Shown here: positions 53,301-58,564 of the stretch, one piece after another
Position numbering within the stretch: the stretch's first letter is position 1
Layout: each line of letters begins with the position of its first letter
Assembly: GCF_009834535.1 (NCBI RefSeq)
Contig: NC_045714.1
Location: forward strand, 14,632,001-14,696,000
Reading direction: 5' to 3'
Source: Camelus ferus
Lineage: Eukaryota
DNA: 64,000 bases
Notes under the pieces: model-generated
What the model was told of the DNA's origin: nothing
Database searches by the model: none
Seen by the model: only the letters and a program-made list of their open reading frames with translations
Made by a program: the position numbers and the translations under genes

Positions 53301-56300
53301 GTGTTAACCTCACCTGCACCTGAGAACAGAGGAGGTTGGGAACCCCCAGAAGGTGCCCCGTCCAGTCTCAGCTTCCTCACCTACACGCAGGGTGGTCCCT
53401 GCCCCTCCCTCACAAGCCCCAGTGAGAAGGAAAACCCAGCCTGGGGAAAGCTCCAAGCAGGGACACCGTGGTTCCTGCTACCGCAACGGTGTTCCCGGGA
53501 TCCTGGGCTCCAGGTGTGAGTCTAACAGGTGGGAGGCTGTTGCCTGGTGGGGCCGAGGACACTGTCGGGCCACGCTGGGCTGGGCGGGTGATGTCAGCAG
53601 GGCACCCGGGGAGCAGCTCGTCAGGGACGGGGACCCGGGCACTAGCCGGCCTGTAAACACCAGCACGCTCTGTGCAGGTAATTGACTAGTAACTGTCGTG
53701 TAACTGCAGGGTAATCACATGGTTATTTTTGCTTTGCAAATTAAGTGTTACTATGAGAGTGAACAATTATGCAGGGTAATTATACAGCGGTTCACACGCA
53801 AGGCCGGGAGCAATCATCAGATGATCCACAGGATGTGAAGCTGTGGCACAGACACGGAGTCGTCACCACGTAACTGTACACTGGAGGGAGGCTCGGCTGC
53901 GCCCACGGGGTACCTCCCGCTGCGCCCGGTCCCCACCTCCCACGCACAGCCAGGCCCCACGAGCAACACCGTTTACCTGAGATGTCCCCAGACCTCGGAC
54001 CCATGGACTCGGCTTGACATGACCAGTTTTCCAGGAAAGTTGTTCTCTTCCTAATTCCATGGGGTTTCGGCAGAGCCACCGCCGGCCGAGGAGACGGCGC
54101 AGAAAGGCAGGAACGGGACAAGGAGCCGGCCTCTCGCCGTTTGCCTGGTGCCCCTCCGCAACTGGGCCCCCAAGAGACCCCAGGCAGGTGCAGCGACGAC
54201 CCTGACTCAGGGCCCCCAGCTCTCTCCTGTGTCCTCAGCAACCAGGCTGCTCACCAATTAAACTCGGAGCAGGGAGAGGTGGGCTGCCAACTTGGGGTCA
54301 CTCAGCACCGCAGCAACTAAAAGGCATGTTTCAGAGTCACACCCTGTAATTCAGTCACAATGAAAAGGGCAGGGAGAAAAGGTCAATATTGTTCTTAATT
54401 AGACTAACTGCTTCCTTTCTGCCGGGGACACGTGCGAGCGGCAGTTTAGCAGGGGGAGGAAAAGGCTGGGAGAGGCAGCCCTGGGCAGGTGACAGAGCGG
54501 GAGGGAGCTCTGGAAACACACGTGCAGAGGGTCCAATCTGGCCCACCTGGGGCGACTGAGCCGCTTGGAGGGGCGCAGACCTCTAGTCAGCCAGGTGAGC
54601 CTGGGCAGGGACATCGCCGGTGCTGGTGCGGTGCAGGGTGGGGGGCCTCCGGGATGCGAGGGCTGGGGGCTGGAGGAGATGAGGGGCGGGAGAGCCACCC
54701 CTCCCGGTACCCCCTCCAGGGAGGAGCAGGGCAGAGCTGGGGGAGGGATGCCCGCTTCTGGCCCCTCCCCCTCCCCCACGGAGGCCCCTCCCCCTCCCCA
54801 CGGACACACCTGGCCCTTTACTGGGTGGGCTGGGTTGGCTCCCTTCTCTGAGCGACCCATTCAAGGCGGCTTCCTCAGGCTTGGGACTGCCATTTGTTCC
54901 CTCCTGAGAGACTGGGATCCTGTCTCATCTTTCTGTGACCAGCCTGGATGGATGGGGGAGTTGCTAAAGCTGGACTTTGGCTGCAGTGGGTGTTGGGGTG
55001 AGGCCAAGGACCCCCACATAGGGAGGGCATCAGAGGAAGGAGGGAGGGGTCAGAGAGGGCTGGCAGGGGTGGGGGCTGTCCACAGTGTCTCAGCCAGGGA
55101 GCAGCTCCCCTCCTCTCCTGACCCAGGGACCACCCTCAGGGGTCCACGCACACCCTCTCCCAGAGCCAAACTCTGAGGGTCACTGGACCCGGCCCAGCCC
55201 CCCACGGCCCCCCAGTGAAGAGTAGGGTCCCTTGGCCTTAGAGACTCTCCATGGACAGGGCGGGGGCTCCTCCCACACCCACCAGCAGAGGAGGCCCCCA
55301 CCTGCCTCCCCCAGGGGGGCCGTGGCACTCAGACTCTGAAAGCGTATTTGTTAAATGCAGCATATAGCTCATGATTAGATTTTAATTTCAATACACTTTG
55401 TTAAAAATAGATCGCTCTCACCAAGAGTGGGGCTGAAGGAAGGCTTTAAACGGCTCATCTTTGGAATATTAATAGCATGGAAAGTGTTATTAGAATAATT
55501 TTTCATCATGAATAATAAATTAATAGAATAATTTGGTGGTGCCATGTGACCCCCGGGTAAGGGTGGGCTTTGTGTCGGCGGAGTGGGGAGGCGGGTTTGG
55601 GGTGTGGATGGAGGATGGAGCTGCCGGGGCTGAGGAGGCGCCAGACATTAACCGGGCGAGGTGTCTGCAGGGATGGGGGACTCCCAGACGCATCTGGGTG
55701 GAGGACAGGGGCTTGGGACCAGTCCTGCAGAATTTCTGAGCTGAAAGGTCCTGGATTACAGATCAGCTTAGCCAGTTCCTTACTCCAACAAAAAAAGCTG
55801 GAAAAAGTCCACAGTCTGAGAGCCCCAATAAAGCCCCATCCTGTTGGGGAGAGCGTGTGCACTTTTTACTCTTTTGGCCCCCCTACAACTTTCTCTAATG
55901 CTTTTTTTCTCCTTGGCAAACATCAGGCATTTTCAAGTCATCAAAAACCTGGAAAAATTGTTTGATGGAGCACAGGGGGCTAATTAAAGAGTAAGGGGAT
56001 GTCTTTGGGGCCCCAAGGGTCTCCTCGGCCCTCTGTGATGCTCAGACCCCCGAGGTCACACCCGCTTCCTCACCTGCCTGTGGTGGGAACTGCCCACAGG
56101 AACCCCACAGTGTCAGGTCGCAGGTACAAGCATGCAGGGTTGTCCTGCTGGCCAGAGTCAAGGACAGAGACTCTTGCTGGCTCTGCTCGGGTGAGGTGTC
56201 CCCTCCTGGCCAGTCAGCTGTGGCCGAGGCAGATGGAGATGTGGGGCTGACCTTGCAGATGGAGGTGTGGTGTGGGATTGACCTTGAAGGTGGAGGTACC

Positions 56301-57081
56301 ACCTGCACCTGGAGTGTCCAGACAGATACTTGTCTGTCTTCTAGCTGCTGTGAGTGAGAGCGAGGCTAGCAGGACCCTCGGGAGGGTTTTGGGGAGGATG
56401 CCTTATTGGGGGCTTCCTGGAAAGGCTGGCCTGAGGACAGGGACTACTGGTCCTGCCCTGGGAGTAGCTATGCCCTGAGCACCAGGTTGTGGCTTCCTCG
56501 GGGCCATCCTGGGAGTCACAAGGGGAGCTCAGGCCTGTAGATCTGAGAGGCAGGACCTCGGGTGGGCAGGGCAAGCTTGGCCGTTGGGGGAGGGGCCAGG
56601 ATACCAGGGCGCCACACCTGCTGAATAAGCCGAAGGTGGGGCATGGCTCCCGTGGGCCGTGTGGGTGGAAGGCAGAGTTGTAACCCCTGGCCCACTGTTT
56701 CCATGGATGCCCCTCCAAGCACTGTCCCCAGACTGGCCAACCAAGGCATCTCAGGCTGGACGTTTGACAATTTCTTTGGCACAGTCTCAGGTGTACACGC
56801 CCCAGTGTGAGTGTGTGAGTGTGCATGTATGTGAACTAGAGTGCGCATGTGCGTGCTCGTGAACACACACGTGTGTCCTGCTGACAGCCGCTGTCCCTCA
56901 GACCACTCGGCCCCCCTCAGTCTGGGGCTCCGACCATGCATCTCTGTGGGAGCCCCGCCTCCACCGCATCCGGGAGCCACAGTCACCCACGAGGACACGC
57001 ACGCGCCGCCCGGGGCTGCTATCCTCTCTGTCCTTTCTCCGGTGTCTTCCCAGCAGCTGACAATTAACGTTCGAAGGAACA

Positions 57082-57199
57082 TGAAACAGAGGAGAAATTA
57101 CAGCAATTCATCAACCGAAATGATAGGGATAGACATGTGTCGGCAGTGGAAACAGTTTCTAACAAAATTAAAGTATTTAGAGACTTTCCTCAAATTTCA
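57082..57199 (+). ncRNA. HAR1A: HAR1 (Human Accelerated Region 1) orthologous 118-bp element, core of the HAR1A/HAR1B lncRNA locus
   Basis: TGAAACAGAGGAGAAATTACAGCAATTCATCAACC...AAAGTATTTAGAGACTTTCCTCAAATTTCA is exactly 118 bp and aligns without gaps at 105/118 to the chimp HAR1 sequence as recalled; orientation relative to BHLHE23 matches human. Transcription in this species is not shown. Confidence 0.95.
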
Positions 57200-57203
57200 A
57201 GTT

Positions 57204-57211
57204 ATGCAAAT
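57204..57211 (+). promoter_or_regulatory. Perfect octamer (POU) motif next to HAR1
   Basis: ATGCAAAT begins 5 bp after the end of HAR1. Confidence 0.45.
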
Positions 57212-58564
57212 CCCATCTTCCGTGTGGCTGCTCTGCTGCGGCTCTACCTGCAGGATTACCCAGAAGCGCCACACGCGCTGTCGTGACTGGGTCCCTCCCG
57301 CCCCGCCGCCACTCCCCCTCTGTCCAGCTCGAGAAGGTCACAGAGGCCTGGCCCGGGAACCAGGCAGGCCCGTGCTCAAGGAGGACCCTGGGCCTCGGAG
57401 ACCCGCAGAGCTGCACAAACTGTCCGGACGGAAGCAGGCATTCATCCTGGTCACTGTCCCTGCTACGTGTTCTTCAATGGCACAGTGACCATCGGCCAGA
57501 AGGGACATGACTGGGACACGTGGCCACCCCCTGGCACTGTGGCCAGGGCAAGTCTAGGGCGGCTGCGAGCAGAGCCCAGACGGGTCCAGATTCTAGCTAT
57601 GAGCCAGGGACCCCAGAGCTGGGCTTCTCTGGCTCAATGTACCCCAAAGTCCCCTGGAGCCCGCGTTGAAGTGCAGATTCCAATGCAGAAGTTCCAGTTC
57701 TGCATTTCTAGCTGGCTCCCAGGTGACGTGGCAGGAATGCCGAGAGGTGGTCGGGGACTGGGAGCCTCAGGGCCTGGGGCCCACACAAACCAGGTGTGCT
57801 GTGCACAGCCCAGGCTGCTGCCCACTTGGAGGCGGACGCTGGGATGACCCTGGCCCCCAGGCCTGTGTCGGGTCTCGCATGCCTGGGAGCCAGGCCTGCG
57901 GTTGGCTTCTGGACGTTAGCTCTGGGAGGCAGGCGTGGCCCCAGAGCTCTATTCCCATGCCATGGGCACTGCCACTTAATTTCAATGTAATTGATGTCGA
58001 ATTGGGCACCCAGCCCCCTGTGGAATGCCTGATGAATTCACTGTGATCAACGGTTTTCCAAGCTCAGGACGGTGGCCAATCAGAGCCGCCACTCCTGACA
58101 AGGTTAAGCAGGCCAGGGACACCGGCAGAACAAGATGAGGGCAGGGAGGGGCGCCTTGGCCCACACCAGCCCCAGCTTCTTGGCGGCCCCCAACCCACAG
58201 ACCATGTAATGAAGCTGTGTGCTGCAGGGCAGGGAGTTGGGGAGCCAGTTCCTAGCAAGTAGAAAGATAACGGGAGGAGGTGGAGGAGGGGGTTTGGTGG
58301 GCAGGGCTGGGGGCCTGGTGCAGAGGAGGGCAGAGATGGCTCTGTCCCCGCTCCTGCTCCGGATTCCAGGGCTCTGAGCACCTTGCTGCTTGCTGAGACC
58401 CCAAACCCTCCACAATAGAGATTCCCAGCCCCGGGGCCCGGGGCAGGGGCCCGCGGAGAGCAGCGGCCCAGGCCACATACTCGGCCAGCTCGCCTGGGCA
58501 GACACCCTTGGCCTTAGACAACACAGCGGCTGTGGATGGTGGACCAGTGACTGGGTCACCAGTC

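Follow-up and report, generated by a model that had tools for sequence, protein, structure and literature searches.

The window analysed in this work, a stretch of 64,000 nt of Camelus ferus DNA, contains at 57082-57199 on the forward strand the 118-mer HAR1, the shared first-exon core of the lncRNA genes HAR1A and HAR1B. The Rfam family RF00635 matched this interval (57082-57199, +) with 127.5 bits (gathering score 40, E=8.4e-16) over model positions 1-118 and with no indels, and this was the only HAR1 match in the window. This brain RNA element, known for its rapid change in humans, is the textbook case of a sequence that had stood still for over 300 million years before changing in the human lineage alone; human HAR1 (HAR1A/HAR1B) is reportedly the subject of Pollard et al. 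2006. Compared with the Rfam consensus, the camel copy deviates at the positions listed in an earlier reading of this DNA, which was made without database searches and is referred to below as the sequence-only reading. The element is AT-rich (35% GC) and lies between flanks of about 60% GC. An open frame of 215 codons runs through HAR1 (56841-57488, +), but it is spurious and does not represent a gene; the frame starting from the ATG at 57081 stays open across the whole element.

In an alignment of 13 taxa the conserved block extends beyond the 118-mer on both sides, upstream over 57040-57081 (+) and downstream over 57200-57235 (+), which gives a block of 196 bp (57040-57235). A CTGACAATTAA core just upstream of HAR1 (57057-57067) and an octamer-like ATGCAAAT just downstream of it (57204-57211) are invariant in 13/13 taxa, including the window. 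The conserved block may be both an RNA and an element bound by transcription factors. Another AT-rich conserved non-coding element was found by flank BLAST and alignment 1.6 kb upstream of HAR1 (55337-55542, no strand assigned); it can be aligned to birds, and was used as an internal control. Inside it there is a 21-nt tandem duplication in both birds aligned. This element may be an enhancer or a part of HAR1B. Elsewhere in the window a tRNA-like match (1355-1421, - strand) reached 33.2 bits, slightly more than the gathering score, and probably represents a SINE's tRNA-derived head and not a tRNA gene; a BLAST search of the window for a second copy of 1251-1500 found none.

Comparison loci and orthology

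HAR1 and its flanks were collected from 13 other animals by way of spurious ORFs and one metagenome contig. When the 48-residue translation of the HAR1 frame was used as query against representatives, and the translation of a relative against 90% clusters, the protein searches gave 16 spurious 'proteins', which are HAR1 translations from other animals and whose contigs are the loci L001-L014. The window's own 215-aa frame, used as a protein query, identified no homologous proteins. L015 was obtained by searching metagenomes with a degenerate HAR1 DNA pattern, which yielded one contig (JGI metagenome), from a bird. Full-length HAR1 was present in every comparison locus (120-144.4 bits, Rfam); among all loci, the camelids are represented by the window only. 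Protein collections contain spurious 'proteins' of 67-263 aa (P0001-P0020), which are translations of HAR1 together with its GC-rich flanks from birds, dolphin and other mammals; where site 72 is C, HAR1 sits within an open reading frame.

Two of the loci could be assigned to a species: L001 is from the Atlantic white-sided dolphin (run ERR13362599; PMC13157609) and L006 from the northern goshawk (run ERR7254635; PMC9020535). The flanks of L004 and L015 are 79-85% identical to those of the goshawk over more than 4 kb, therefore both are birds. On tree shape only, we infer that L002 would be a ruminant-like and L003 a pig-like relative.

The flanks of the camel HAR1 are collinear with those of five mammal loci over 0.6-2.5 kb (flank BLAST). 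Identity was 77% over 1.4 kb with the dolphin and 70% over 2.5 kb with L003, and the flanks of L012, L007 and L005 are also collinear with the window. Collinearity of the flanks across mammals shows that the HAR1 of the window is the orthologous locus and not a retrocopy; by Rfam match and flank homology, the sequence is the HAR1 orthologue of a camel. In Logan contigs, all sampled words of 57070-57215 were present in at least 18 DNA runs of two organisms, and the HAR1 locus overall was present in runs of three organisms from several studies. Since the same stretch was found in runs of three organisms, the changes described below are old and fixed and not assembly errors. Assembly errors, named in the sequence-only reading as a possible refutation, are contradicted by the contigs, in which the same stretch recurs across many independent runs from different samples and studies. 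Taking into account this agreement between three organisms, the kilobase-scale collinearity with the HAR1 loci of other mammals and the single HAR1 match within the window, the possibility that the sequence is an artefact of assembly or sequencing, or a paralogous or retro-copied HAR1 instead of the orthologue, is negligible.

Contigs derived from RNA contained 0.92 (run X18) and 0.75 (run X15) of the words of 57070-57215, and only 0.15-0.27 of a 1.5-kb stretch in the same runs. The words in these RNA-derived contigs suggest that the camel HAR1 is still transcribed.

Substitutions and rate on the camel branch

The 118-mer is identical in the goshawk, in the birds L004 and L015 and in the mammal L007, and this agreement across birds and a mammal defines the ancestral sequence of amniotes. 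Two further mammals are only one (L005) or two (L009) changes away from it. The numbers of differences in the other loci are 12 in L014 (including a 1-nt deletion), eight each in the dolphin and L012, seven in L003, six in L013, and five each in L002 and L008.

The window differs from the ancestral 118-mer at 12 sites: T6C, G7A, T28C, T35C, T41G, T47G, G48A, C55T, A56G, A61G, T81A and T103C (window positions 57087, 57088, 57109, 57116, 57122, 57128, 57129, 57136, 57137, 57142, 57162 and 57184, +). Eight of these changes are AT->GC, three are GC->AT and one is neutral (W->W). The sequence-only reading had counted 13 substitutions (nine AT->GC, three GC->AT and one neutral). Twelve of them were reproduced with the derived ancestral 118-mer as reference, but T72C has to be removed from the list, C72 being ancestral, so the number of AT->GC changes falls to eight and the other counts are unchanged. 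Site 72 (window position 57153) is C in all three birds and in most of the mammals sampled, the one locus with T being L008, where this T precedes G73. In chimp HAR1 we take site 72 to be T. With C72 ancestral, this T would be derived, and counts made relative to chimp inflate those of other lineages by one.

T28C is common to the dolphin, L002 and L003. A change shared with the relatives in the dolphin clade must be older than the camel lineage, which leaves 11 private changes (7 W->S, 3 S->W and 1 neutral). A61G was also found in L014, whose flanks are unrelated to those of the window, therefore it must be a parallel change. Parsimony identified four further private changes in the upstream extension (57041 A>G, 57052 T>A, 57068 T>C and 57076 A>G, in 57040-57081) and two in the downstream extension (57201 A>G and 57217 T>C, in 57200-57235). 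Over the whole 196-bp block, 13/18 changes are AT->GC.

To relate these numbers to a neutral expectation, an ML tree was built from 1,533 flank columns of 9 taxa; the neutral lengths are thus those of about 1.5 kb of flank and not of a genome-wide model. The tree obtained, (dolphin, L002, (L003, (other mammals, window))), fits with camelids branching first among cetartiodactyls, and the neutral terminal branch of the window has a length of 0.149. In the phyloP-like test, with the tree fixed and under HKY, a model with a common scale on every branch was compared with one in which a single terminal branch had its own scale. For the 118-mer the scale of the window branch was 0.69 as compared to 0.13 for the rest (LRT 16.0, p=6e-5; p=6e-4 after Bonferroni correction over 9 branches), and for the 196-bp block (57040-57235) it was 0.96 (LRT 34, p=5e-9). 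The conserved rho was 0.13-0.19, and the window was significantly higher both for the 118-mer and for the block. In contrast, the scale of the window could not be distinguished from the neutral value of 1 (p=0.22 for the 118-mer and p=0.84 for the block), and since the roughly 1.5 kb of flank is alignable and therefore slower, these ratios of HAR1 to neutral are overestimates, biased upward and not downward. All other sampled lineages were significantly below neutral, the dolphin being second with a scale of 0.45 (acceleration p=0.05). The 11 private changes observed compare with 2.3 expected if the element were conserved (P=3e-5) and 16.3 if it were neutral (P=0.11). Equal-time Tajima tests, for which the goshawk served as outgroup, showed faster change in the window than in L007, L005 and L009 (p=0.0005-0.008), but no significant excess over the dolphin (10 vs 6), L003, L012 or L014.

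These values show that the camel HAR1 branch is faster than the conserved rate predicts and is not above neutral. The camel HAR1 is a lineage-specific accelerated region in the phyloP ACC sense, and not a human-type HAR that evolves faster than neutral. The proposal of an independent acceleration thus stands when measured against the conserved rate (LRT 16.0 and 34) but not when measured against the neutral one (scale 0.69-0.96). The camel lineage does not form a singular case, because L014 has 12 changes, the dolphin and L012 have eight each, and the Tajima tests against the nearest relatives were not significant.

Two of the other lineages are described here in some detail. HAR1 of L014 (L014:516-632, run SRR28250425; 120 bits) is as much changed as that of the camel, with its 12 differences including the 1-nt deletion. 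Seven of its changes are W->S, and one compensatory pair was found at 79/98 (T79C with A98G). The flanks of this locus have 68% GC and cannot be aligned to those of the window; the element is still constrained, with a scale of 0.13 on its long neutral branch. The dolphin HAR1 (L001:261-378), eight changes away from the amniote ancestor, has the borderline p value given above (scale 0.45, p=0.05). The constraint on HAR1 may be weakened more widely in cetartiodactyls.

The upstream element at 55337-55542 allowed the locality of the effect to be judged. Its private changes were 4/172 sites in the window, 19/187 in L003 and 11/179 in L007. The camel copy of this element has remained tightly conserved, so that only the HAR1 block is sped up; comparison with the neighbouring conserved element, which had been proposed along with the acceleration claim, thus confirmed a local effect. 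A regional or genome-wide speed-up was rejected, the upstream element being slower in the window than in L003.

Base composition, RNA structure and indels

Among the private changes in the flanks on the window branch, W->S changes occurred at 0.153 per W site and S->W changes at 0.106 per S site. These rates imply an equilibrium GC of 0.59, which is equal to the observed GC of the flanks. Combined with the composition of HAR1, the flank rates predict that 77% of the W<->S changes should be W->S, whereas 70% (7:3) was observed (p=0.82). For the block the private changes were 12:3 (W->S:S->W) as compared to an expected share of 0.74 (p=0.42). Relative to the flank spectrum there is no W->S excess, either in HAR1 or in the block, and the special GC bias claimed by the sequence-only reading is not supported: the AT->GC bias is what any unconstrained AT-rich stretch at this place would show. 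Convergence on the human changes, claimed in the same reading, proved to be at chance level. Three of the 12 window sites overlap human-changed sites (18 sites), with a hypergeometric P of 0.27, or 0.31 if only W sites are considered.

The Rfam model RF00635 contains no base pairs. The predicted minimum free energy (MFE) of the window 118-mer is -19.5 kcal/mol vs -20.5 kcal/mol for the ancestral sequence, with z around -1 for both, and on these values a stabilisation of the RNA as in human was rejected. In the RNAalifold consensus, T103C converts the G74-U103 pair to G-C, and T47G and G48A disrupt two weakly supported pairs. The swaps UG->CA (6-7) and CA->UG (55-56) are mutually complementary. 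A possible 3-bp helix between 5-7 and 55-57 (window 57086-57088 and 57136-57138) would thereby stay paired with two pairs changed on both sides, an outcome reached in 5/500 shuffles; this helix was chosen post hoc and appears in neither the MFE nor the consensus fold. The route through CpG intermediates that had been suggested for the TG->CA (6-7) and CA->TG (55-56) swaps is plausible. The paired swaps in the putative helix 5-7/55-57 could represent either true covariation or the same CpG-mediated path (TG->CG->CA) taken on both strands. No window-private indel was found in the 196-bp block vs 2.1 expected from the flanks (P=0.125), which gives slight reason to suspect that the block is still partly constrained.

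Explanations for the camel changes and comparison with known systems

Taking these results together, we lean, with modest confidence, towards the explanation that the camel lineage relaxed its constraint on the HAR1 block, which has been drifting toward the regional GC level. According to this explanation, purifying selection on the block (~57040-57235) would have been largely relaxed on the lineage leading to the camel, and substitutions would since have built up in it about as fast as in neutral DNA nearby. The substitution regime of the GC-rich region would favour G/C, probably through regional GC-biased gene conversion (gBGC). Under such a regime an AT-rich element freed from constraint would drift mainly AT->GC, and the decay of some of the newly made CpGs would produce the TG->CA and CA->TG swaps. 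On the window branch, and on this branch only, rate and spectrum are equal to those of the neighbouring neutral DNA. We infer that relaxed constraint and not a short burst was the cause, and that gBGC underlies the GC bias of the region. Points against relaxed constraint are the absence of indels in the block (a weak hint), the intact CTGACAATTAA and ATGCAAAT cores and the probable transcription, and the T103C pair and the helix-preserving swaps could, if the predicted pairs exist, reflect persisting structural selection. Within the long terminal branch, a burst followed by renewed constraint would give the same totals.

Such a burst might have been a local gBGC episode, in which a transient recombination hotspot over HAR1 fixed AT->GC changes against purifying selection while the element remained functional; the same mechanism has been invoked for human HAR1. 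The prevalence of AT->GC changes (8/12 in HAR1 and 13/18 across the block) in a GC-rich region agrees with this explanation, as does the fact that two of the three GC->AT changes adjoin an AT->GC change and could be decayed new CpGs. The untouched neighbouring conserved element is what a short tract would leave behind, and lack of block indels and probable transcription fit with an element still in use. However, the W->S share of 70% is not above the 77% predicted from the flanks, the total rate is not above neutral, and a hotspot of the human kind should give nearly pure W->S changes far above neutral (18/18 in human, PMC6839894). As the data require nothing beyond the regional regime, we regard a local episode as possible but rather unlikely. 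Positive selection, which in a second adaptive acceleration would have remodelled either the RNA of camel HAR1 or a regulatory element that overlaps it, agrees with the restriction of the branch-specific acceleration to the HAR1 element, with the possible double compensatory change (pairs 6-56 and 7-55; 5/500 shuffles) and with the strengthening of a predicted pair by T103C. It is highly improbable in view of a rate that does not exceed neutral, a predicted stability that did not change (-19.5 vs -20.5 kcal/mol), the two predicted pairs broken by T47G and G48A and the lack of site-level convergence with human; moreover, the 3-bp helix is post hoc, occurs in neither fold, and TG->CG->CA on two strands explains it equally well.

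It could also be argued that HAR1 is less conserved in Cetartiodactyla and in other mammals than the literature implies, and that the camel represents the tail of an ordinary distribution. The eight changes of the dolphin (branch scale 0.45, p=0.05), the seven of L003, five of L002, eight of L012 and six of L013 speak for ordinary divergence, as do the 12 changes of L014 including the deletion, whose Rfam score (120 bits) is below that of the window (127.5), and the non-significant Tajima tests of the window vs dolphin, L003, L012 and L014. When scaled by its own neutral branch, however, only the window reaches neutrality (L014 0.13, all others below 1), and for the window p=6e-4 is retained after Bonferroni correction over 9 branches, so that we find ordinary divergence distinctly unlikely. 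A composite of the above, in which camelid HAR1 went through a second short and rapid episode (gBGC or adaptation), the RNA stayed functional and the swaps at 6-7/55-56 are truly compensatory, appears unlikely as well, if less so. If this composite were true, camelids would have repeated, as a natural replicate, what happened to HAR1 in humans. The sequence-only reading had offered the lineage as such a replicate, but on the present evidence, with the rate not above neutral, it is not a second acceleration of the human kind.

A literature search for HAR1 in camels or cetartiodactyls found no relevant report among the papers covered. The results presented here show that HAR1 has not stayed frozen in all non-human lineages: in one camel lineage it evolved at an approximately neutral rate, and the dolphin and at least two other mammal lineages have 8-12 changes. 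If constraint has truly been lost, camels would amount to a natural knock-down of this conserved sequence, and would provide a baseline for the neutral decay of an AT-rich HAR1 in a GC-rich region. No special force is needed to give such decay its AT->GC bias, and this bears on the question how much of the human pattern needs selection.

The camel HAR1 can be compared with several known systems. Like the tracts described by the phastBias model of gBGC (PMC3744432), it has AT->GC-skewed changes clustered within a short interval of GC-rich DNA; unlike those tracts, its W->S share does not exceed what is expected for the region, and its rate is not above neutral. It resembles the lineage-specific accelerated regions of the phyloP ACC type in non-human mammals and birds (PMC12521581 and studies cited there) in being deeply conserved elsewhere and in showing a rise in rate on one branch by LRT. 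The camel test was made with a 9-taxon tree and neutral lengths from 1.5 kb of flank instead of a genome-wide model, and the element concerned is HAR1 itself. Human HAR1 has 18 changes, all of them AT->GC, where 0.27 would be expected since the split from chimp, which is far above neutral (PMC6839894), and it is debated whether these changes are due to gBGC or to selection (PMC5767953, PMC6839894). The camel and the human cases concern the same orthologous 118-nt element in a GC-rich region, and in both many substitutions, mostly AT->GC, accumulated in one lineage after very long conservation. In contrast to human HAR1, the camel element has 11 private changes for an entire deep terminal branch, its rate is 0.7-1.0 times neutral, its 7:3:1 spectrum matches that of the flanks, and there is no gain in predicted RNA stability.

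Forward-genomics screens make use of conserved non-coding elements (CNEs) whose constraint has been lost in a single lineage ('diverged' or relaxed CNEs). The camel HAR1 differs from such elements in that it has so far acquired no indels and is probably still transcribed; we know of no trait loss associated with it. It is like them in its approximately neutral rate on one branch, in a substitution spectrum equal to that of its surroundings, and in lying among neighbours that stayed conserved.
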